Of a DNA stretch of 64,000 nucleotides, positions 5,001 to 21,500 are shown piece after piece (position 1 is the stretch's first letter; the number at the start of each line of letters is the position of its first letter). The notes below the pieces were generated by a model. That model made no database searches. It was not told the DNA's origin and was given only the letters and a program-made list of their open reading frames with translations. This DNA comes from Selaginella moellendorffii. Its lineage: Eukaryota; Plantae; Lycopodiophyta. Position numbers and translations under genes: made by a program. The stretch is taken from NCBI RefSeq assembly GCF_000143415.4, contig NW_003314315.1, positions 124,001-188,000 on the forward strand, read 5' to 3'.

Positions 5001-6769
5001 TTACATGGAGGCCTTTTGTCTAATCTCTGTGGAGGAGAGATCCACACGAAAAACGTTCTCTGGAAGGGACGAAAACATTTCTTTCACTTCTTCTGGAACA
5101 TTAACATCCAACATTGTCTGCGAAAAGAATGCATCAATAACGATCATGGGAACAATAAAACTTTCACCTTGAAAACGCCATCGACAATGCGTCCCGCAAC
5201 CATGAAATCACACCCGAGTCTCTGTACGTTCAGGAGAACTTCCATCATTCTCTCCCTGCTTCCACCATAGTACTTCTCCTGAAGAGATCAATTTTCGTGA
5301 AAGTGATGCGAGCAATGATATATAGCTTACATTGACAAGTCTCATCGCTGTGTCAACGCCGACGAGAAACGTACTGTCCGGGAGAATTTCCGCTTTCTTG
5401 TAGAAGAAAGGCTGGTTGGTCACTATCATAGTCTTTCCTGGCGAGTTCACAAAACATTGTGAGAACAGACCTCCTAGAATTCTCTCTCCATACCTCTTTC
5501 CACGAACTGCTTCACTCGCTGCTTGATCTCATGAACTGGAAGCGCTGGCTTGTCTGCGTTAATTGCTGATAGCTCGAAACACGGACTGCCGCCTTGCACA
5601 AGGCTGTAACTTGCGTTAGATCAACAAAAACATTTTCTATCAGGAAACTTACGTGCATGCCGTGCTCATCAGTGTAAGATGACCTTCATGCAATGGATTA
5701 AAAGCACCGGAAAGAACGACCCTTCTGCCGGTTCTACGATCTTTGCTATCTGTATCACAACTTATGAAAAAACTAAGCACTGAGCAAATTTCGAAGTACC
5801 TTCACCGGGATAACGGACCATGCAGACATTTCCATGTATTAGCTGCTCGAGCTCTTCGTCCTCTGCGTAATTCAGCCTCGACTCTCGAATTTCTTCCTCA
5901 GGGCTCTTCAATTCTACTGGTACCGCATTTCCAATCTCACAAACGTCAGCCATAGCCTGGACATAAATCAAAAGTTTGAGCGAACTGAAAAGCCTGGTCA
6001 TGAAAATCAAAACCTTGATCAGGAGCTGACTGGATAGACAATCCTCTCCAAAACGATCTCTATATCCCTGGAGATGAGATGAGAACAATCGATAAAATTC
6101 GTTGCTGTAAATATACAAGACCTTGTAAAGAGTGAGGTCATATCTCCAAAGAGATGAATGCGTTCGAGCAGATATGTGGCATCTGGAAAGAAAAAATGAA
6201 AATAAAAATCTTCCACGAAGAACACGAAAACAAAGTCACCTGTGATCCCCTCGCTTGGGACTCCCAGTCGTCAACGCACCAGTGACTCCAAATCCAGCCA
6301 CCAGAGTGCCTGCACTGCATTCCAAGAAAAAATCCGCTCACTCGATCGAGAAAAAACTCTAGTAGAAATCACACCTGGTAGCGAGAGAGTAAGAGCTCGA
6401 TTGTAAGCAGCGGTAGCCATCTCATCGGCTACTTCACGACTAGCATATTGCTGTGGAGCCTAAAATCCAAAGATCTTTCTTTGTTAGATCGAAGATATTC
6501 TAGCCTACTCTTCCAAGGAGCTGGATCATCGACGCGCGCGTATAGGGAACTGTGGCTTCCAGCAGCGTCTGTGAAGCTCGCGGCACCGACAGCAGCCACC
6601 CGAGCGCCTAGAATCCATAGAAATCCCCGATAGCAATCAAGCTAGGAATCGATCGATCGATCCACACAATGCGGCTGCTGACCTGCGATGCGCCGCCGGC
6701 GAGGTGAAGAACAGCGTGCGTTGGCGAGGAGTGGATCGCCTCGATCGCCGCCTTCATGGCCGAGTCCAT
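5001..6769 (-). CDS. Nucleotidylyl/cytidylyl-transferase superfamily protein (At2g01220/At3g27610-like), multi-exon
   Basis: Exons read MDSAMKAAIEAIHSSPTHAVLHLAGGASQ|ALGWLLSVPRASQTLLEATVPY, then the HxGH motif SGAFNPLHEGH, then NQPFFYKKAEILPDSTFLVGVDTAMRL, ending FRVDLSSTEIRQKASM*. Confidence 0.88.
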
Positions 6770-6794
6770 CGAATTGGAAGAACCCTAAACTATT

Positions 6795-7061
6795 TCACTC
6801 TATCATGAGCAGGCCAAGGCTCGTCGTCAAGCTCGGATGCTCCGGCAAGGAGTACATCACTCCTGATCCGATCGCGCAATCCTGGGACCCTGTCGGACCG
6901 ATGATCCCGTCCCAGGAGCATCGGCTATCAACAAACAGTCGGATCGCTTGCGGCAGGAGATGGGAGGCCCTGATCAATCGCCTCCAGATCATGAGCAGCT
7001 CGCCAGAGCTCGTGCAACGCTTGCTTCGCGATAGAGACGATGGTGATAATGTCACTGGAGA
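6795..7061 (+). pseudogene. Deletion-riddled remnant of the UFL1 5' region
   Basis: Ordered blocks gctcgtcgtcaagctc, ctccggcaaggagtacatcactc, ggatcgcttgcggcaggagatgg and gatagagacgatggtg..aatgtcactggagag match 18600-19349. Confidence 0.85.
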
Positions 7062-7346
7062 GAAGAAAGAAAGAAGGAAAGCTCGAGAAGAACTAAGATG
7101 ACGAAAATGGAAGAAAGCTCGCAGCAAGAGATCAAGGCCGCGAGCTTCCAGCCGCGAGTGGAAGGAATGGTAGCATCCCTCCGGATGTGGAAGTGATCTA
7201 CGTCCCGCACGAGATCAAGAACAAGGACTCGGGCCTGAAAATCGGCCGGAGATTGGTCAGGAACTAGACTAGGCAGAGTGTGGAGATTTTTCTCGTATAG
7301 AATGTGAGCTTCTTTCTATCTATCTTGTATTGTTCTTGCCTGGATT

Positions 7347-7625
7347 TTGGGCAATGTACGCGGAGTGTGGCTCCATGGTGGAGCTCATCGCGTGTTTGAG
7401 AGGATCCGGGAGCACGATCTAGTGTCGTGGAATACCATTATCCTGGGCTATGCGGAGAATGGAGAGTGTGGTGAGGCCTTGGAACTTTTCTCTCGCATGG
7501 AGGACGTCGAGGGCCTTGCTCCGAATCGAGTGACTTTCCTCGCAGCGATCAAAGCCTGCACTCGGTTTGCTGCGAGAGAAGAAGGGAGGAAAGCTTGTCA
7601 AGCTAAGCCTGGACGACGGCGATGA
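7347..7625 (+). pseudogene. PLS-class PPR fragment
   Basis: AHRVFERIREHDLVSWNTIILGYAENGECGEALELFSRM...PNRVTFLAAIKAC. Confidence 0.8.
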
Positions 7626-9030
7626 TCACGGGCTATGAGGAAAACGGCGAGAGCAGCATTGCTCTGGAACTCTACTCGCGACTGGCCGAAGGCCGCTGCG
7701 CTCAGACTGCGTCACCTTTGTCGCTGTTCTCTCAAGCCCGCTGTTCACACTCATGTCTCTTCCTTTAACCAAGAGCTCCGGCTTGCGAGCCTCGTTTCTT
7801 ATTGGAGCACTAGCACAGGCCTTGAGAACCGCAACGTAGCTTTGAGCGTCTGGTAGAATCCTGTCCCTTGTTTGCATGCGGCCGAAGAGCTCGAGAGCTG
7901 ATTCTCCGTCCCCGTTCTCGGCATAGCCGAGAATCATAATGGTCCACAGCACCAAGTTGCGACCCTTGATCCTGTCGAAAGCTTGACGACCATACTCGAT
8001 GTTCCCACACTTTGCGTAGGCGTCCACCAGGCTGCTTGCGACGAAAATGTCTTAGTCGAATCCAGCATTTGCAGCTAGAGAGTGTATATCTTTCACTCTC
8101 TCGAAACAACAGCCTTGATTCCCTTCCACCACCTTTGCTACCACGCCTTTAAGGCTGCAAGATAAGTCACGCGATCTGGAGTCCACCCTTGTTCTTGGAT
8201 TCTCCAAACAGCTCAAGAGCTTCTCGGCATACCTTTGAATCAGTGCACTCCACGAAGCTACGTCTCGCGTCAGCATCTTGTCAAACACTCGCTGAGAATC
8301 CGTCAAGCTTCCGTAGACGAAGATCAAACTGTTCGCCAGGAAGTGATCCAACATCCAACCGCACTTCATTGCCTCCGAGTGAAGCTCCAAGCACGTAAGT
8401 TTCACCATCTTTCCACCGATTTCCTTTAGACTGTCCGTTGTATCCGCTGTACAAGCCGCACAAGCTTTTACGGTCGCAAGGAAAGTAACTCGATTCGGCA
8501 TGAAGCCTTCGCTTTGCATCCCCACAAATAACTCCAAATCCAGCCCGCCTTCACCATTCACGGCATAAGCTAGAATCATCGCGTTCTAGGACACCAAAGT
8601 AGGCTGGATCAAGACTCCGTTGGCGTCGACTAAACTTCCACAACCGGCGGACATAGCGATCAGCGTGTTGGCCACCGAAGAACCGAATCCACACCCACCT
8701 CGACCAGCCAGAGAGTGTATTGCTAAAACCTTCTCTCCAGGCACTGAACCTTCACAGCTCTCCCGTCTATCTTTTCGCCTCTCTCCTTCTCTGCCAAGTC
8801 CGAGCAAAGTTACCGAGACGGGAACACAGCCATCTTCTTCGCTTTGCATGCTCGAGAAAACGTCAAAGACGACTGCCCGTCACCAACCCATCCTGTCAAA
8901 CACGGCCCAAGCGTCCACCATGCTTCCATGCGTACATATCCACCAGAGTGCTGGCCACGAGTTTAACCCACTCCTCACAGCTCGAGCGTGAACCTCTCGT
9001 CCAGGCTCTAGCGCTACGAGCTTGACAAGC
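7622..9030 (-). pseudogene. PLS-class PPR pseudogene (frameshifted, with internal deletions)
   Basis: Several P/L/S motif pieces in different frames (DAYAKCGNIEYGRQAFDRI, SLTDSQRVFDKMLTRDVASWSALI, VASTLVDMY). Confidence 0.85.
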
Positions 9031-9057
9031 TTTCCTCCAACTTTCCTCCAACTTGTG

Positions 9058-10312
9058 GGCCGTGCAGATTTGGCTAAAGTTCCCGAGGTGAAAGAACGCG
9101 TAGAGAAAATGCTGCAGAAACATGTCGAGACTCAAAGTGAGACAGCAACGGGGTTAGCTTTCGATCTTAAGGTACTTAACCAGGCGCTCGAGCAACAGGT
9201 GCAGGACGACTTCGAGCGTGCTCCAGAATACTACAAATGGTTCGGAGGCGTTGTGTGCTTGCTTTGGTCTGATGACTTCCAAAGGAAGAATTCGTGAGAG
9301 ACTCGTTGTCTAGGACGGACCTCGGCCAGCTATTGGAGTGCTTCAAACAGAAAGCTCACGGGCAGAAAATATCTTGGGCTCTATTACCTTTCCGGAAGCC
9401 GGCTGCGAGCTCTTCATTCCGTTGCGAGCTCTTCATTGTTGCTGCAGGTCGATGATAAGCACTGTAGCAAATGTAAATCGCGTGAAGATCCTTCCCGAGG
9501 AAAATACCGAGGAAAGTGGATTGTATGCGATGTTTGCCAACAGTGCTACAACTTTAGCTGTACCAGAGTTACTAAGAAGCAGGAGCTGGAAGTATTTTGG
9601 CAGTGTTCGTCCTGTAAGAGCATGAAAAGAGAAGAGCATTTGGAACCAAGGCGGCTGTTGCGATATTACGAAGGAGATCTGAAAGCTGCTCTACTGGAGG
9701 CCGGTGAGTTAGCGCTGACATCAGTTAACATTGGTTAACATTGGTTAACATAGTTGGCGAATGATGGCAGGTGCTGATGCTATCCAGTATGTTTGGAGGC
9801 CATTGATCAAGAATGATGGGGCTGTGGGCTACACTATTCTTCCTAGGACTCTGGCGCAACCAACTATAGCACCACGCCATCCAGTATCGGCAGAAGCTCT
9901 TAAAACACATATCAGTGCTCTTCGTGCATGGAACGATATCTATGGCGGGACTAGTAAGCCGGATGAGTTTGTACTCTGCTTCTTCCTGGCGGAGTCGAAC
10001 TATGACGGGTTCAGAGCTACTGCGACAAGTCCCACTAAACAAGCTGTGAAAGGTTCGTTATATATCCGTTTCATAGCTGCTCATACTTATGGAATGAACA
10101 ATGCAGGTATTCGCCAGTGCAAAGTGTTGCTGCGGTACGATGGTGAAGTGTGTAAACCTAATTATTTTGATCCTGTGGAAGACGTCCTGGGTGAGTGTGA
10201 ACAAGAAGGGGAAGTTTGCTTTCTGAATCCGTCTTGGAAAGTTTTTGTGTCTGTACTATCGCAAACTTTAATGCCAAAGCAGAAAAGCATAGGGTGCTAT
10301 TGCTCCAGATAG
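9058..10312 (+). pseudogene. 5'-truncated, degenerate copy of the Crinkler-type NTPase-PHD-REase gene
   Basis: Inverted copy of 16061-17566. It lacks the P-loop, has frameshifts and deletions, PHD His->Asn (CYNFSC) and REase Asp->Gly (GAVGYTIL). Confidence 0.85.
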
Positions 10313-11474
10313 TCAGAAAGTCTCGATGGAGAAAGGCAGGCTGCCTTTTTCCTGTGACAAAAAAGAAAAGCCAGCGTTGTTATGGAGCATTCCTGCTAGC
10401 AATTTCCAGGAATTTTTTTATTTTTTTCTTTTTTTTTTCCCATGAGATAGCTGAAAATTGAACAGAAAGCTTGCTCCGTAGCAGCACTTCACCTCAAGTT
10501 CTAAACACGAACAATTTCTCCTCCTCTCGAGCGCCAAATTGTGAGCTTCACAGACTCGTAGTAAAAAAACAGTCGTTCATGAACTGTATCAGATATCATC
10601 TTCTTACAAGGATCATATTTTTAATTAAGAATTAAATTTTATTGTATTTATAGTTATAATAAAATATTATACTTATAATTATATCATTTAAAATTTTAAA
10701 ATAAAAAATTAGTATATTTTTATTTCAAGAGTAATTTTGACAACGTTTTTATTTTAAAATGAGTTATTGGCATGTTTTCATGTTTTTCTTACCAGTTCTA
10801 ATGAATATTGAAACCCTGAGAACTGAAACCAATATTTGCGAGATTGAGTAATGAAATTATATACAAAGTGGTTCACACTAACTTATGGAGCATATTCTAT
10901 GTTTCTACACGTTAAAGGTTAAAAAAAATGACTCTATTGCGTTGTTTATGTTTGTTCATATATTGCACCCTTACAAAAGACTGCTTCACCTTGATGCTTT
11001 AAGAATCTCATCACTAGCTTTTGATGATGCATAAACATTCTTGGCTTGGCAACCCAGTAGCTGCTCCAATTAGCCATCCAGCAGATGCCCTTTAACACTA
11101 AGACCTCCTCTCTGCATGTTTGTTTAAATCAGCATTAAAATGTGTACAAAAGTGGTAGCAATGTTCTTATGCTTTCAAGAAGATAAACCGGAGCCTTACC
11201 GGGACCACTACCAAAAGGCTGTAATAGGCTTGAATTGCCAAGAAGAGGAGAATTTTATTAGCACATGGGATTGCAAGACTAAGAGAGTTATAACCAAGTT
11301 TGTGAGCTATACATGCAGATGCAAAGCTTCTTGAAGAGGAGCCATGTTTATCAAAACAAGGTCCAATTTCTTGCGTATTTTGTGATTGCTACGAAGCCAT
11401 GTAATTATCTGGTCAAAATTTTAATTCCATAATGCAAGTTTTCATTTTTTTTCTTTTTCTCACTTTTAAGGAGT

Positions 11475-12194
11475 TTAATCCCTTTGCCATTCCTTAATCA
11501 CGGGTTCGTACGCCTCCGCCACGTCTACCGTACACGACTTGATCCACACGTTGCAAATCGGGCACTTTTTCTGGATCGTCGCCATTTGCACCGCGCACTC
11601 CTCACACATGAGATGGTGGCACGGCACCAGTGCTTTCGTTCTCGGCCCCTCCCCACAGACACTACACTTGGGATCCATCAACGTACTTATCCTGTAGCTG
11701 GCATACGGCTTTGGTACCGTACAGCGTACGACGAGCTGCCACCCTTCCGCCATAGCCGTGACCTTGGCCCCGAGCACGTACTTGATGGGAGGGAAGCCGT
11801 CTCTCACCGCTTCCAGCACGAGCCTTCCTTTGAAATTGCCCAAATCCCCACGGATCGTCGTGAGGATGAGATCCACTGGGGAGCCCAAGTCGAAAAGCCA
11901 GCTCCTGCCCATGCCCAAGACCGTGACCTTGGGATACTGGGGTGACGAGATTTGGAAAGAGTTGGCCGAAAGATTGTTGATGTCTTGTTGTTGTTGCTGC
12001 TGCCAGACGTTTGCTGCTAAAGGGAAGTTGTTTGAGGCGCTATTGAAGAAGAGGCGGGGGCTGTTGTGAGGAACTGGATTGCCGCTATTGTAGCCCAAGG
12101 AAGCCAAGGTCGCCTTAACTTCTTCAAAGAGAGCTGGTGGGAGGCCCGGAGGACACACTGTGTTCGTAGCACCGTTGCACCGAGAAAACGCCAT
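11475..12194 (-). CDS. Intronless C3HC4 RING-finger protein, 239 aa (copy 1); putative E3 ligase
   Basis: C-terminal CSVCGEGPRTKALVPCHHLMCEECAVQMATIQKKCPIC; TATA box at 12233-12239. Confidence 0.8.
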   Translation of the reverse strand: MAFSRCNGATNTVCPPGLPPALFEEVKATLASLGYNSGNPVPHNSPRLFFNSASNNFPLAANVWQQQQQQDINNLSANSFQISSPQYPKVTVLGMGRSWLFDLGSPVDLILTTIRGDLGNFKGRLVLEAVRDGFPPIKYVLGAKVTAMAEGWQLVVRCTVPKPYASYRISTLMDPKCSVCGEGPRTKALVPCHHLMCEECAVQMATIQKKCPICNVWIKSCTVDVAEAYEPVIKEWQRD

Positions 12195-14372: not shown

Positions 14373-15092
14373 ATGGCGTTTTCTCGGTGCAACGGTGCTA
14401 CGAACACAGTGTGTCCTCCGGGCCTCCCACCAGCTCTCTTTGAAGAAGTTAAGGCGACCTTGGCTTCCTTGGGCTACAATAGCGGCAATCCAGTTCCTCA
14501 CAACAGCCCCCGCCTCTTCTTCAATAGCGCCTCAAACAACTTCCCTTTAGCAGCAAACGTCTGGCAGCAGCAACAACAACAAGACATCAACAATCTTTCG
14601 GCCAACTCTTTCCAAATCTCGTCACCCCAGTATCCCAAGGTCACGGTCTTGGGCATGGGCAGGAGCTGGCTTTTCGACTTGGGCTCCCCAGTGGATCTCA
14701 TCCTCACGACGATCCGTGGGGATTTGGGCAATTTCAAAGGAAGGCTCGTGCTGGAAGCGGTGAGAGACGGCTTCCCTCCCATCAAGTACGTGCTCGGGGC
14801 CAAGGTCACGGCTATGGCGGAAGGGTGGCAGCTCGTCGTACGCTGTACGGTGCCAAAGCCGTATGCCAGCTACAGGATAAGTACGTTGATGGATCCCAAG
14901 TGTAGTGTCTGTGGGGAGGGGCCGAGAACGAAAGCGCTGCTGCCGTGCCACCATCTCATGTGTGAGGAGTGCGCAGTGCAAATGGCGACGATCCAGAAAA
15001 AGTGCCCGATTTGCAACGTGTGGATCAAGTCGTGTACGGTAGACGTGGCGGAGGCGTACGAACCCGTGATTAAGGAATGGCAAAGGGATTAA
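14373..15092 (+). CDS. Intronless C3HC4 RING-finger protein, 239 aa (copy 2)
   Basis: Protein identical to copy 1 except V->L in ALVPC/ALLPC. Confidence 0.8.
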   Translation: MAFSRCNGATNTVCPPGLPPALFEEVKATLASLGYNSGNPVPHNSPRLFFNSASNNFPLAANVWQQQQQQDINNLSANSFQISSPQYPKVTVLGMGRSWLFDLGSPVDLILTTIRGDLGNFKGRLVLEAVRDGFPPIKYVLGAKVTAMAEGWQLVVRCTVPKPYASYRISTLMDPKCSVCGEGPRTKALLPCHHLMCEECAVQMATIQKKCPICNVWIKSCTVDVAEAYEPVIKEWQRD

Positions 15093-16060
15093 ACTCCTTA
15101 AAAGTGAGAAAAAGACAAAAATGAAAACTTGCATTATGGAATTAAAATTTTGACCAGATAATTACATGGCTTCGTAGCAATCACAAAAAAACGCAAGAAA
15201 TTGGACCTTGTTTTGATAAACACATGGCTCCTCTTCAAGAAGCTTTGCATCTGCATGTATATCTCACAAACTTGGTTATAACTCTCTTAGTCTTGCAATC
15301 CCATGTGCTAATAAAATTCTCCTCTTCTTGGCAATTCAAGCCTATTACAGGTAGTGGTCCAGGTAATAAGAACATTGCTACCACTTTTGTACACATTTTA
15401 ATGCTGATTTAAACATGGATTGTAAACATGCAGAGAGGATGTCTTAGTGTTAAAGGGCACCTGCTGGATGGCTAATTGCAGCAGCTACCCAAGAATGCTT
15501 ATGCATCATCAAAAGCTAGTGATGAGATTCTTAACAAGGCCTTTTTAAGGGTGCAATATATGAACAAACAAAAACAACGTTATGTGGTCATTTTTTTTAA
15601 TCTTTAATGTGTAGAAACATAGAATATGCTCCGTAAGTTAGTGTGAACCACTTTGTATATAATTTCATTGCTCAATCTCGCAAATATTTATATGATGTAG
15701 GGTTTCAGTTCTAAGGGTTTCAATAGTCATTAGAATTGGTAAAAAAAAAAACATGAAAACATGCCAATGTATATACATTTTATTACTCATTTTAAAATAA
15801 AAACGTTGTCAAAATTACTCTTAAAATAAAAATATATTATTTTTATTTTAAAAAATAATACGCATTTAAATAATATAATTATAAGTATAATATTTTATTA
15901 TAACTATTAATTAAAAATATGATCCTTATATCTGCATCCAGACTTTCTGACGATCTGGAGCAATTAGCAGCCTTTAATCTACAGTACCGTAACGACATCG
16001 GTCAGGCTAATCTTTTCTGCTTTGGCATTAGTACAGACACAAAAACTTTCGAAGACGGAT

Positions 16061-18349
16061 TCAGAAGGCAAACTTCCGCTTCTTGTTCACACTCACCTCC
16101 TCGTATCGAAGGACGTCCTCCACAGGATCAAAATAATTAGGTTTACACACTTCACCATCAAACTTGCACCCCTCGATGTCATTGACCATCTCGACACCCT
16201 TGGGAATCTCCATCTCCTCTGCACATGGAACGGGTGCAGTGTACCGCAGCAACACTTTGCACTGGCGAATACCTGCATTGTTCATTCCATAAGTATGAGC
16301 AGCTATGAAACGCATATATAACGAACCTTTCACAGCTTGTTTAGTTACCCTACGGGACTTGTCGCGGTAGCTCTGGAAGCCGAACCCGTCATAGTTCGAC
16401 TCCGCCAGGAAGAAGCAGAGTACAAACTCATCCGGCTTACTAGTCCCGCCATAGATATCGTTCCATGCACGGAGAGCACCGATATGTGTTTTAAGAGCTT
16501 CTGTCGATACTGGATGGCGTGGTGCTACAGTTGGTTGCGCCAGCGTCCTAGGAAGAATAGTGTAGTCCACAGCCCCATCATTCTTGATCAATGGCCTCCA
16601 AACATACTGGATAGCATCTGCACCTGCCATCATTCGCAATTAGCCAAACAATGTTAAGTGATCTCAGCGCTAACTCACCGGCCTCCAGTAAAGCAGCTTT
16701 CAGATCTCCTTCGTAATATCGCAACAGCCGCCTTGGTTCCAAATGCTCTTCTCTTTTCATGCTCTTACAGGACGAACACTGCCAAAATACTTCCAGCTCC
16801 TGCTTCTTAGTAACTCTGGTACAGCTAAAGTGGTAGCACTGCTGGCAAACATCGCATGCAATCCACTTTCCTCGGTATTTTCCTCGGGAAGGATCTTCAC
16901 GCGATTTACATTTGCTACAGTGCTTATCACCGACCTACAGCGACAAGACTTTGTAAATGTAAGAAACTAACAGTAACTCACCATAAGCACCACGGTATGC
17001 GTAGCTCCGTGCAATACATAAGCAATGGAAAGCTCCTCAAAAACAAAGCCTCGAAGCACCCCGTATTTAGGAATGTCCGACCAAGTCCGCATGAAGAACT
17101 CCAGGTCTATTGCTTTCATCCTCGTCAGAGCAAGAGTGAACTGGGCCTGGACTTTAACACTGCAAAAGTCAAGGTAGTACTCACGGAATGAAGAGCTCGC
17201 AGCCGGCTTCCGGAAATGTAACAGAGCCCGAGATATTTTCTGCCCTTGAGCTTTCTGTTTGAGGCACTCCAATAGCTGGCCGAGGTCCGTCCTAGACAAC
17301 GAGTCTCTCACGAATTCTTCCGGGTTCAATCTCTGGAAGTCATCAGACCAAAGCAAGCGCACAACGCCTCCGAACCATTTGTAGTATTCTGGAGCAGCTC
17401 TGACACGCTCGAAGCCGTCCTGCACCTGTTGCTCGAACGCCTGGATAAGTACCTTAAGATCGAAAGCTAACCCCGTTGCTGTCTCACTTTGAGTCTCGAC
17501 ATGTTTCTGCAGCATTTTCTCTACTCGTTCTTTCACCGCGGGAACTTTAGCCAAATCTGCTGGGCCAGCAAGCATGATACTTGCTCCAAAGTCGTATTCC
17601 ATGTTTGCCCACTTCTCAAGACTGCGAAGCGTTTTCTTCAGAGTTTCCAGCTCACTCGCAAGTTTCTCGTAGTGGATCCTCCACAAGTCCACCAACGCCG
17701 CGTACTCATCTTCCTCCCACGGGTACATGTACATGACAGTCTTCTTCCGATCGGGTTTGGCAGCTTTAACGTTTTCCTCGGCTGGCGAAGCCGCAAGTAA
17801 TACAACGGGTCCGATAGCACCATCTGTGGGGACTTTCTGATTTATCAGATGCCACGACGCTTTGGCAAACGTGGCCGCGGTGAAGCTGTCGCGCTTTGCC
17901 ACACGGACCGCAGTGCCTTTGAACTCCCATACGAAGCCAGCAGACTCGTAGAGAATGTGCAGCTCCAGCTTGACTTTGGAATCTCTCAACTCTATAGCGG
18001 TTCTGATGATGAAGTACCAAAGGAACGCTGACTTGCCCACACCCGAATTCCCGTTTATGTGGCAAATCCAGTCGTTGGCAGAAAACCCAGACTCTGAGCA
18101 GATCTGGCAAAATAAGGAGTCAAACATCCTCCTTACGTACAAGCTGGACAGTCTCTTGTCTGCCGAGACCGAGATGGGATTAAACATCTTGATAACCTTG
18201 CCCGCTGCAATGTCCTCCCGCTTCAAACTCCAGACATAGCTCCACCAAGACTGTAGCGATTCCAGCTCTGCGGCGAGCGCACACAAATCAGGCAACGAAC
18301 ATAGCCCAGCTACACTCCACTTACCGTCTGGCCCCAACTCAGCGCTCAT
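16061..18349 (-). CDS. Crinkler/RHS (CR)-type P-loop NTPase plus PD-(D/E)xK-like REase protein with an inserted PHD finger. Exons 18349-16982, 16934-16679, 16623-16061 (probable in-frame 54-nt intron 16273-16326; 3' end uncertain)
   Basis: NTPase region: LYVRR..F, GNSGVGKS (Walker A), YMYPW, WFGGVVR, SRALLH..YYLDFCS, GVLRGFVFE. PHD exon: CSKC..WIACDVCQQCYHFSC..WQCSSC. REase core: WRPLIKNDGAVDYTILPRTLAQPTVAPRHPV..FVLCFFL. GT-AG introns of 47 and 55 nt join the frames correctly. Confidence 0.8.
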
Positions 18350-18452
18350 CCTGTGCCAACTTCAAAGTTGATTTGACCTGTTGTTAGCTTTAGGGTTTGT
18401 TATAAGACGCATCTTTCTAGAATCTAGGGTTTAAAGAGACGATAGCGGAAGA

Positions 18453-18532
18453 AATCAAGCTAGGAATCGATCGATCGATCCACACAATGCGGTTGAGGTG
18501 AAGGCGTGGATCGTCTCGATCGCCCCCTCCAT
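18453..18532 (-). pseudogene. Deleted remnant of the nucleotidyltransferase gene's first exon and intron
   Basis: aatcaagctaggaatcgatcgatcgatccacacaatgcgg and gtggatcg.ctcgatcgcc are shared with 6636-6770. Confidence 0.8.
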
Positions 18533-18563
18533 CGAACTGGAACAACCCTAGAATATTTCAGCT

Positions 18564-21500
18564 ATGGATGCCGAGCTCCGGGAGCTGGAGCGCCTGTTCG
18601 AGGCGGCGCAGCAGGCCAAGCCGACCGCGCGGCTCTCAGAGCGCAGCGTTGTGGAGCTCGTCGTCAAGCTCCAGCAGCTGGGAATCCTCGATGCCGATCT
18701 CTTGCACACCGTCTCCGGCAAGGAGTACATCACTCAGGTATGGCTCCTCATCCAAGGATTCCTCCAATCCGGAAATATTTCGGCAGGATCGCTTGCGGCA
18801 GGAGATGGAGGCCGAGATCAATCGCCTGGGCCGTGTCTCGCTCGTGGATTTGGCGTCCTTGGTCGGCGTCGATCTCTTCCATTGCGAGCGCCAGGCCGAC
18901 CAGATCGTGAGCAGCTCGCCGGAGCTCATGCTCGTGCAAGGCGAGGTGGTCTCGACCAAGTACTGGGATAATCTGGCGGAGGAGGTGAACGAGACTTTGC
19001 AAGAGGCCAGCCAAGTCTCTCTCGGAGAGCTTGCAAGACGGTATGGTGTTGGAGCGGAGCTCTTGACTGGGATGCTCTCGTCCCGGATAGGTACCATTGT
19101 AAGAAGCGTGTTCTTGGATTTTTGGTAGATCATCTAAGGCTGGAACTTTTTTCTTTTCTTTTTTCTCGATAGATTCACGCGAAGTTGGAAGGAGGCCAAC
19201 TCTATACTCCAGCATACGTTGCTCGAGTGAAAGCCACGGTTCGCGGAGCTTTGAGAGCCATCACAGTGCCTACGTCCTTGCAAAGTGTGTGGAACCTTTT
19301 GCAAGGTTTGCTTCGAGATAGAGACGATGGTGGTAATGTCACTGGAGAGCACAGCTTGTTTCATATGGTGTTGAACGAGCTTGTCGCGGAGGAAGCGGTG
19401 AAAGGTACTCTTCGTGGATCAGTCTGGACACCAGCGGTAAGAACACTCTTTTCTCTTTTCAGAGATTAACTATTCTATGGTGTCAGGTGTTCGCTCACTC
19501 GCAACGTGAAAGTGTTGAAGCATTCTATTCTCAGGTGCTCTGCTTGGTTTGTCTCTCTTTATACAAGCTTATTCATGTTTGAGTTTCAGAACTCCTACAT
19601 TACTTATGATGCTCTTCAGAAGCTTAACATCTCTCAGCCCAGGCAATACTTGCAGGTAAGTTATCTCACATGTCCTTTCGCTTATTAATTTTGCTTCAGA
19701 CTAAATATCCAGAAGGCATCGCTTTGGACAATGTATTTGTTCACAATTCCTTCATAAGTTTGCTGGATTCAGCTGCGGAAGAGTCAGTCAAAGGGGGAGG
19801 ATGGTAATTCGAATTCGGCTAGGCTATGTACAAATGAAATGGTTCTTTCAGGTTGGATGCCCTTGACGTCCTTCCATCAACTTTTGGATGCTCAGATTCT
19901 GGAAAGCTGCTACTTTTGTGCCCATTCGTACAACGAGCGTTGAAGGTACATTATGACTGGGAGCCTTATTTGGAGTTTACATTGTATATGTCGATTTACA
20001 GGATTCAACAGCGACCCTTGTGGCCGAAACATGCATCGTCGGTACAGGCTTTGTAAAGGTCTCTAGTTAAGTGGCTGCCATCATTTTCTAACTCGATGAA
20101 TTTGGACAGGCACTGCTGGAAAAGTTTCAAAATATGTTACGAGAGATTCAAGACAAAACATTTTCGACGCTTGAAGTGAAACTCGAAGCGGAACCTGAGC
20201 CTGAGCTGGACGAGAATGAAACAAAGCCGTTTGCTTCAAGATCGAAGAAGAACGACAAGAAGCAAAAGGATAATAGTATCCGAAAAGAAGAAGAAAACGA
20301 AGAAAAGTCGGGGAAAAGTAAGAAGAAGACAGCAAGACACAAGTCAAGCAAGACACCATCTGTTAAAGAAGCAGTGCCTTCAAAGGCGAGAAAGGGCTCT
20401 CCTGCGGACGAGATGGATCTTTTGGCTGAAGAGAAGCTATCAAAGAAAATCATCGAATGGTATCCAGACCTTGAGGCTGATGGAACAGGTATCGTCCATC
20501 TGTAAATCCACTTCTAACTCTGACCGAGCAACATTGTGTGCAGAGGATGGCGATACAGGTGTTCTTGCAAAATGTTTGGCTGATCAACTGCGACCACAGT
20601 TGATCTCATACATGACGTCCCTCAAGCGTGCTTATCTTGGAGCGAACACAGAGGAGAGGAGAAAACGGATAGATGCACTGCAGCGCAAAATTGATGAGGT
20701 TGTATTTCTGTATGTTTTGGAAATTTCTGATATATCTGCAACAGGATTATGCTAATCTGCAGCTGTTCTCAAAGGCAATAGAGCTGTTTGAAGATGACAA
20801 GGGAATGGAAGTCGGTATTGCTGAGCTCTTTTATTACAGGCTAACAATAGATATTTGCAGGCTGTCTTGCACAAGCATCTGTTGCGTTCAACTGCTTCCG
20901 AAATAGCGGATGTTTTCCTAGAAACACAGGTTTTACCGAAATTCAATTGAGCACTTATGATTCTTATTGTATCCATTTGCAGGCTTTGGAACATAGGATA
21001 GAAAATGCCGAAAGTGCTGGAGCTCAACCTTGCAAGCCATTTTCGATGGCAGTGAGGATGTCCCTGGTATGATAGTCCCTGTGGTGACACTGACTCATCT
21101 TATCTTATCAGGCCAAAAATCTACCTGAACCTCTCTCCTCTGCAGCAACTGAGATGGTGGCGTCTCTGGAAGGAAAGGTGTGCTTTAATATCTACCATAT
21201 CCATATCCGCTGTCACTAACACGAGAGAAATCTTCCTAGAACATTGGAGCATTTGATTCTGCTCTTGAAGCGAGCGTCACGGAAAGGTACGCAAACTGGG
21301 CGAATTATAAATGCTAAATGCCTCCAGTTGGGTGTTCTTGTAGTGGGCTACGTGTGAGAAAGCTTGACAAGAAGGGAGAACGATCATTGTTCTTTGCATA
21401 TCGAAAGGTTAGCGATATGGTTGTAGCAAAATTGGCAACGACAAGTCCTTTTTATCCAGAGCCTCTCAGAACAAGTGAACCAAGAACAAGATCCCATCGC

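Follow-up and report, generated by a model that had tools for sequence, protein, structure and literature searches.

Within a 64,000-nucleotide stretch of the Selaginella moellendorffii genome (contig NW_003314315.1, positions 124,001 to 188,000; hereafter the window, in which positions are counted from the first letter) lies a minus-strand gene, SELMODRAFT_421858, whose product carries a PHD finger embedded in the nuclease-like domain of a protein of the Crinkler/RHS (CR) type. Such a combination had been proposed from the letters of this DNA alone (hereafter the original prediction). On balance we regard SELMODRAFT_421858 as probably a nuclear-type, header-less member of the CR proteins, a PHD-tethered combination of a P-loop nucleoside triphosphatase (NTPase), a helical/winged-helix part and a restriction endonuclease (REase)-like domain, with a probable role in genome conflict. 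The family to which it belongs is a land-plant branch of CR proteins that has expanded in S. moellendorffii, the PHD finger having been inserted before that expansion. The homology to the CR core, the point of insertion, the gene structure and the history of the family are established. In what follows, P0001 denotes the JGI protein model of SELMODRAFT_421858, P0002 its PHD-less sister paralog at locus L001, P0004, P0005, P0007 and P0064 further paralogs, and P0053 a paralog annotated in RefSeq; all features of the gene are on the minus strand.

Homology to the Crinkler/RHS core and the site of the PHD finger

A word-index search with exon 1 identified the window gene as SELMODRAFT_421858 (P0001; 684 amino acids; labelled "PHD-type domain-containing protein") and retrieved three paralogs. 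An exhaustive phmmer search of 1.84 billion representative sequences, with residues 1-612 of P0002 as query, returned 51 hits, among which all PHD-bearing matches looked up, and likewise all close or fragmentary ones, were from S. moellendorffii. The best match outside Selaginella was a hornwort (Nothoceros) transcript lacking the PHD finger (E 2.6e-17), followed by Mortierellomycota and metagenomic proteins. In three of these outside relatives the shared core is preceded by the Crinkler N-terminal domain (PF20147; 69-92 bits), and the Crinkler-header proteins were matched at E-values of 2.7e-6 to 4e-4. When the Selaginella rows were compared with the fungal and other rows by hhalign, the two profiles aligned over 452 columns (probability 100; E 9.8e-47), with the PHD finger appearing as a gap in the non-plant profile. 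These three lines of evidence bear out the proposed homology to the NTPase-nuclease core of Crinkler/RHS proteins, and language-model features independently place the protein near RHSP and Crinkler clusters.

The shared core is marked by a series of motifs in a 22-protein family alignment ranging from plants to fungi (A5; further alignments are referred to as A6 and A8): YVR, GxxGxGKS, hhhhD, SP, YxPW..E, GGxPR, SxxLLH, GxxFE, PxxxNxxxxDxxxxPxxLxQxT..HP, FVVP and Q. Every motif on which the original prediction had relied is present in SELMODRAFT_421858 and falls in a conserved column. The Walker A motif, GNSGVGKS (18029-18052), occupies an invariant GxxGxGK[ST] column of A5, and GGVVR (17357-17371) represents the family motif GGxPR, whose two Gly and Arg columns are invariant. 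Between YxPW..E and GGxxR lies a helical insert of ~80-110 residues (window 17400-17700, residues ~215-320 of the read-through protein), which occurs only in Selaginella rows and is longest in SELMODRAFT_421858 and P0002.

Exons 1 and 3 had no match in a Pfam search; sequence searches of the PDB with exon 1 and with a C-terminal profile gave nothing meaningful; and neither the family profile nor the hornwort protein, when used in a word-index search, brought in anything beyond Selaginella or self matches. Two relatives match RHSP at 5e-4, and four weakly match nSTAND3. The absence of a header or signal domain, noted at the outset, was upheld: exon 1 contains no Pfam match to an N-terminal header, and the N-terminus aligns straight to the core with no region equivalent to one.

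Exon 2 (16679-16934) encodes the PHD finger, with the LLRYYEGDLKAALLEAG strand and helix after it. The exon scores 29.2 bits against the Pfam PHD domain PF00628 (cut-off 24; E 9.6e-7), and all eight C4HC3 zinc ligands are present in the sequence, spanning 16767-16919 from first to last Cys; the 256-nucleotide exon thus encodes a complete finger, as had been claimed. In the structural model described below, residues 148-206 match solved PHD fingers with root-mean-square deviations of 2.5-3.5 over 47-55 residues. The nearest solved PHD sequences include PHD1 of AIRE and the finger of PHF21A, which we take to be readers of unmodified H3K4.

From the aligned sequences the point at which the finger entered is firm, since the spacing from GxxFE to PxxxNxxxxD is 42-65 residues in PHD-less relatives versus ~118 in the PHD-bearing Selaginella proteins. 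The PHD finger occupies a variable loop of the nuclease-like domain, with the first core strand ahead of it and the strands bearing QxT and the conserved Asp behind it. Alignment, model and the hhalign gap agree that it lies within that domain, downstream of the GxxFE helix and upstream of the conserved Asp, as originally proposed, and the insertion recurs in about a dozen Selaginella paralogs.

Predicted fold of the nuclease-like domain

To describe the domain that holds the finger we used an AlphaFold (AF2) model of residues 282-668 of P0001, built on 32 family rows (predicted local distance difference test score, pLDDT, 70.4; predicted template modelling score, pTM, 0.68); a single-sequence AlphaFold run on P0001 reached a pLDDT of 33 and gave no usable model. 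The model begins with a helical/winged-helix part, the long GxxFE helix, a short strand and the PHD finger (148-206), and continues with a strand and helix (LLRYYEGDL...), the strands bearing WRP, the Asp and QxT and, after one more helix, the strand FVLCFFL and a final one. As modelled, this order of elements is the alpha-beta-beta-beta-alpha-beta of the PD-(D/E)xK core. The candidate active-site residues can be placed in it. The Glu of GxxFE (17036-17038), a candidate for the first acidic residue, is nearly invariant in A5 and lies in model helix 116-136. The conserved Asp of VDY (16565-16567) opens the second core strand and is invariant in A8 and nearly so in A5 and A6; its codon lies where the original prediction had put it. 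The sequence Q-x-T (LAQPT; 16529-16537) takes the place of the (D/E)xK triad, on model strand 257-261, with its Q and T invariant in A8.

Structure comparisons pointed repeatedly in the same direction. In a VIA-align search covering 48,161 chains, about 18 of the 24 rows that did not concern the PHD finger were PD-(D/E)xK nucleases, aligned across the finger over model residues ~95-350 with Z-scores of 3.5-4.8; they comprised N.BspD6I, the small subunit of R.BspD6I, EcoT38I, SdaI, SfsA, SgrAI, LlaBIII, FokI, Cfr10I, Bse634I, HindIII, LmuA and Can2. Searches of the ESM Atlas with the P0001 model retrieved Crinkler-header and RHSP clusters (template modelling score, TM, 0.44-0.57) and, weakly, one Mrr_cat cluster; with the model of P0002 that the Atlas itself contains they retrieved the same CR clusters (TM 0.52-0.64), then four Mrr_cat clusters and one McrBC cluster. 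The Mrr_cat and McrBC matches have TM scores of 0.3-0.5 (by row up to 0.50). Taken together, the model and these matches lend moderate, convergent support to an REase-like fold, short of proof. The claim of a true REase fold is weakly supported: the order of elements and the recurrent PD-(D/E)xK matches favour it, but Z-scores of 3.5-4.8, TM scores no higher than 0.5 and the replacement of the triad Lys by Thr do not.

Gene structure and history of the family

The gene occupies a minus-strand open reading frame (ORF) at 16967-18349 (460 amino acids), in which exon 1 ends at a GTGAGT donor at 16981, and two downstream exons; joining 18349-16982, 16934-16679 and 16623-16061 yields an uninterrupted frame of 728 codons. 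The two introns first proposed were both recovered. The 47-nucleotide phase-0 intron (16935-16981; GTGAGT..TGTAG) has an identical junction in P0001, the 55-nucleotide phase-1 intron (16624-16678; GTGAGT..GGCAG) is used in P0001, and each has a homologous intron in P0053. The latter protein is only 34% identical, and its introns flank the PHD exon at matching positions (TL|IDNKHC and LLAAG|RNA); as judged from sequence, these positions are the best available support for the splice structure of SELMODRAFT_421858.

Two further in-frame introns are probable, and modify the exons as originally drawn. The first exon, described as one of 456 codons, has an open frame to 16982 but probably holds a 57-nucleotide intron (18268-18324; GTAAGT..CAG), because the equivalent stretch of L001 carries stop codons, two in number; the segment is removed in P0001 and P0002. 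Exon 1a (18325-18349) then contains the start codon (18347-18349), with the P0001 junction at MSAELGPD|ELESLQ. Exon 1b (16982-18267) encodes the P-loop NTPase, the helical insert, the GGxxR/winged-helix region and the N-terminal half of the nuclease-like domain, namely SxxLLH, YLDFCS, the GxxFE helix and the first strand (secondary structure as modelled). Likewise the C-terminal exon, open to the stop codon at 16061-16063, is probably interrupted by a 54-nucleotide phase-1 intron (16273-16326), because L001 has a stop there and P0053 a conserved intron (at AVKG|I); P0001, P0002 and P0004 all skip the segment. It separates exon 3a (16327-16623), encoding the WRP..N..VD..LP..LAQPT..HP core strands, the helix and the FVLCFFL strand, from exon 3b (16061-16272), which runs to the stop codon. 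With both additional introns removed, the predicted product is likely to be ~691 amino acids long, ending at 16061-16063. Its C-terminus, EEVSVNKKRKFAF, is conserved in L001 and includes a basic KKRK (16073-16084) that may act as a nuclear localisation signal. Two features of the JGI model were set aside: a 33-nucleotide "intron" excising VRRMFDSLFCQ, rejected as it would delete the family-wide YVR motif, and a 3' intron (16096-15955), doubted since the read-through tail is conserved in L001.

Transcription was assessed from three stranded RNA-seq runs, ~12% of each being sampled, together with one contig set. Only a few reads mapped to exon 3, each with the orientation expected of a minus-strand transcript.

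A maximum-likelihood tree recovered every Selaginella row within a single clade (100/98), to which the hornwort protein is sister (100/99), with the fungal rows apart; the hornwort placement carries a caveat because its branch is long. The PHD finger is present in all three Selaginella sub-clades, and at L001, the locus of P0002, the PHD exon is recognisable although deletions and stops have disrupted it; insertion thus came before the expansion, and the loss of the finger in P0002 is secondary. The paralogs are 34-63% identical in protein, and several carry a C-terminal SAP/Rho_N tail; P0004 and P0064 have nuclease-like domains lacking the Asp and the Gln. Synonymous divergence (dS) from the L001 copy (L001:4073-6157) is uneven, at 0.59 in exon 1 and 0.17-0.18 in exon 3, which may mean that the 3' part underwent gene conversion or arose by recombination. 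The window itself contains a decayed, truncated and inverted duplicate of the 3' two-thirds of the gene, SELMODRAFT_421855 (9052-10332, plus strand), recognised by tblastn, ORFs and blastn and represented by P0008 on the same contig; in it the PHD exon and the introns survive but the GxxFE region (corresponding to 16947-17182) is deleted. With a PHD-losing sister, a decayed duplicate nearby and signs of gene conversion, the history of the family is one of birth and death.

Several further observations concern the duplicate, the relatives and the surroundings of the gene. By blastn the inverted segmental duplication extends over 9052-11567 (plus) versus 15000-17572 (minus), at 82-93% DNA identity, and includes the 3' flank. 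A very AT-rich stretch just downstream of the gene (15790-15940) contains several short perfect palindromes (TTTTAAAATAAAAA and similar), and the duplicate has a copy of it. Short UFL1-like fragments are found at 6632-7062, with PPR-like ORFs (7347-8579) between them and the duplicate. Elsewhere in the genome there are many short fragmentary models of the family on scaffolds GL377575 and GL377576 (P0009-P0018); SELMODRAFT_409847 is a chimeric model with a DYW-type PPR gene; models 409318-409326 form a tandem cluster; and locus L002 holds a second partial copy, head to head, at 9008-9829. SELMODRAFT_421858 is flanked by ordinary host genes: a RING-finger ORF occupies 14373-15092, and a UFL1-like gene extends from ~18564. 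At the 5' end of the latter (18426-18600), T>C at 18493, A>G at 18545 and a two-base omission at 18479 each occur in about one third to one half of the RNA reads, and are most simply explained as allelic or haplotype differences.

Weighing the readings of SELMODRAFT_421858 and its relation to known systems

If SELMODRAFT_421858 is the header-less CR protein that we favour, the PHD finger, together with the SAP/Rho_N DNA-binding tail in other paralogs, would tether the CR module to chromatin, and the NTPase would gate a DNA-directed activity of the nuclease-like domain, probably in genome conflict, for example against invading or mobile DNA. On this reading the protein would act as a nuclease, read histones and reside in the nucleus, all of which, like the biological role, we infer. 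A stronger proposal, that the intact paralogs are NTP-gated host nucleases in which the PHD finger couples recognition of the H3 tail to DNA cleavage or nicking, as a genome-defence or chromatin-editing system of the spikemoss built from a domesticated Crinkler-type module, we offer tentatively and hold to be unlikely as it stands.

A number of observations weigh against the favoured reading. Some concern the state of this copy. The Asn codon at the Walker B position (17840-17842; WHLINQ), already suspected of marking a degenerate NTPase, is real: the column is otherwise nearly invariant for Asp in A5, and the Asn is found only in SELMODRAFT_421858 and P0002, the other Selaginella paralogs reading HLIDQ. 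In readers of H3K4me3 (fingers of the BPTF/ING type) the aromatic cage includes a Trp two residues before the zinc-binding His; at that position SELMODRAFT_421858 has Cys, reading CYH where P0004, P0005 and P0007 read WYH. The ratio of nonsynonymous to synonymous substitution (dN/dS) between SELMODRAFT_421858 and its nearest paralog, at L001, is 0.42 overall, which indicates only moderate constraint and is averaged with a paralog that has lost its PHD finger. RNA depth is ~1-2 on the gene as against 20-34 on the adjacent UFL1-like gene, a difference in expression of about twenty-fold, and the three RNA-seq runs contained no splice-junction reads for SELMODRAFT_421858, at a depth too low for this to carry weight. 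Others concern the fold and the family assignment. The fold model is based on just 32 sequences; Foldseek found no match to it in the PDB at E<=0.001; the best nuclease Z-score, 4.8, lies under the VIA-align caution level of 8, so that no single structural match is convincing; exon 1 had no match to RHSP (PF07999) at E<=1 in the Pfam search; and throughout the family (A5 and A8) Thr occupies the Lys position of (D/E)xK, which leaves catalysis unproven and the nuclease activity putative.

The first group of observations bears on whether SELMODRAFT_421858 has lost its function or is losing it, on the way to becoming an expressed pseudogene in a family whose design is real, a possibility of appreciable but minor probability in our estimation. 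Besides the restricted Walker B Asn, the altered PHD residue and an RNA depth of ~1-2 where the neighbouring gene has ~30, it would account for the lack of a SAP/Rho_N tail such as the paralogs have (a downstream exon encoding one was looked for, and none was found), for a sister locus already without an intact PHD exon, and for the degraded duplicate 6 kb away and the many fragmentary copies in the genome. It fits poorly with a frame that is open through all exons with canonical GT..AG at each junction, with a dN/dS that is not ~1, with the KKRK tail conserved in a paralog, and with the retention of Walker A, of every zinc ligand and, in the nuclease-like domain, of Glu, Asp, QxT and His. Because of the Walker B Asn, the PHD Cys, the missing DNA-binding tail and very low transcription, SELMODRAFT_421858 is probably impaired or re-purposed; as between a copy that is functional but diverged and one that is dying, the former is somewhat more likely.

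The loss of the triad Lys in every family member raises a different question, namely whether these proteins are catalytic at all. They might instead be adaptors that bind chromatin or DNA, with the nuclease-like domain as a binding scaffold and the NTPase as a STAND-like switch. The weak nSTAND3 matches of four relatives, the additional loss of Asp and Gln in P0004 and P0064, and the character of the PHD finger and SAP/Rho_N tails as binding modules are all in keeping with this. However, even very distant members keep Glu, Asp, Gln, Thr and His with little or no variation, a pattern that better fits an active site, and the published reading of the CR module places its toxicity in the REase domain (PMC5289972); we therefore consider the adaptor reading doubtful.

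That SELMODRAFT_421858 is a transposase-like gene of a mobile element, or cargo of one, as the original prediction had also entertained, is highly improbable: the CR NTPase-REase module has been proposed to derive from prokaryotic transposons (PMC5289972), dispersed fragments are many and some are model-fused to PPR-DYW genes, a partial duplicate lies inside the window and a GingerRoot element 17 kb before it, but the gene is not bounded by terminal inverted repeats or by long repeats and sits tightly between the RING-finger and UFL1-like host genes, the paralogs (34-63% identical in protein) include no near-identical copies, and the duplicate in the window includes neighbour-gene flanks, as a segmental duplication would.

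Taking SELMODRAFT_421858 as a header-less CR protein, its closest counterparts are the CR effectors, whose C-termini, in the account of Zhang et al. (2016) summarised in PMC5289972, are mostly NTPase+HTH (helix-turn-helix)+REase, in a family that also occurs in land plants. With effectors such as the fungal Crinkler-header proteins P0023, P0042 and P0043 it shares end-to-end homology of the core and the motif series, and the predicted shapes of Crinkler-header clusters resemble those of the Selaginella proteins (TM 0.5-0.64). It differs from them in lacking the Crinkler/ubiquitin-like (Ubl) header (LxLFLAK) or any other N-terminal trafficking domain, in having the PHD finger in the nuclease-like domain and the long helical insert between the NTPase and GGxPR, and in being a host plant gene where the effectors are those of pathogens. 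The kinetoplastid RHSPs (PF07999) are among the nearest clusters by language-model features and by predicted shape; unlike them, SELMODRAFT_421858 has no RHSP Pfam match (E<=1) or RHS_N domain, and the PHD insert is missing in the RHSPs. The PD-(D/E)xK enzymes (Mrr_cat PF04471, McrC, N.BspD6I, SdaI and the cleavage domain of FokI) offer a similar order of elements and weak, recurrent matches, and in the model appear to share a first helix bearing Glu, a core strand that opens with Asp and a polar triad on the strand that follows; they differ in that SELMODRAFT_421858 has QxT for (D/E)xK, Z-scores below 5 and a large insert (PHD finger, strand and helix) between core strands 1 and 2.

A parallel in plants is offered by the eudicot CR proteins with Myb-type HTH headers, reported by Zhang et al. 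(2016) according to PMC5289972: they too are land-plant proteins, apparently intracellular, joined to a chromatin- or DNA-binding module. Compared by description only, the eudicot proteins have their DNA-binding domain as an N-terminal header, whereas the finger of SELMODRAFT_421858 is embedded in the nuclease-like domain. A text search, outside which the contents of Zhang et al. (2016) fall, found no published description of the Selaginella PHD-insert architecture, which carries automatic labels only ("PHD-type domain-containing protein"). The novelty lies in a PHD finger housed within the nuclease-like domain of a plant protein that has no header; the CR NTPase-REase module was already known.

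The locus in the window is itself of smaller value, being apparently weakly expressed and partly degenerate, and mainly documents the birth-and-death dynamics of the family. Were the intact paralogs active, they would represent a natural nuclease whose catalytic domain holds its own chromatin-addressing module, and a tractable system for the biochemistry of an unstudied NTPase-REase core. CR NTPase-nuclease modules have mostly been discussed as weapons of pathogens; here they form a vertically inherited and expanded plant family with a built-in finger of the histone-reader type.

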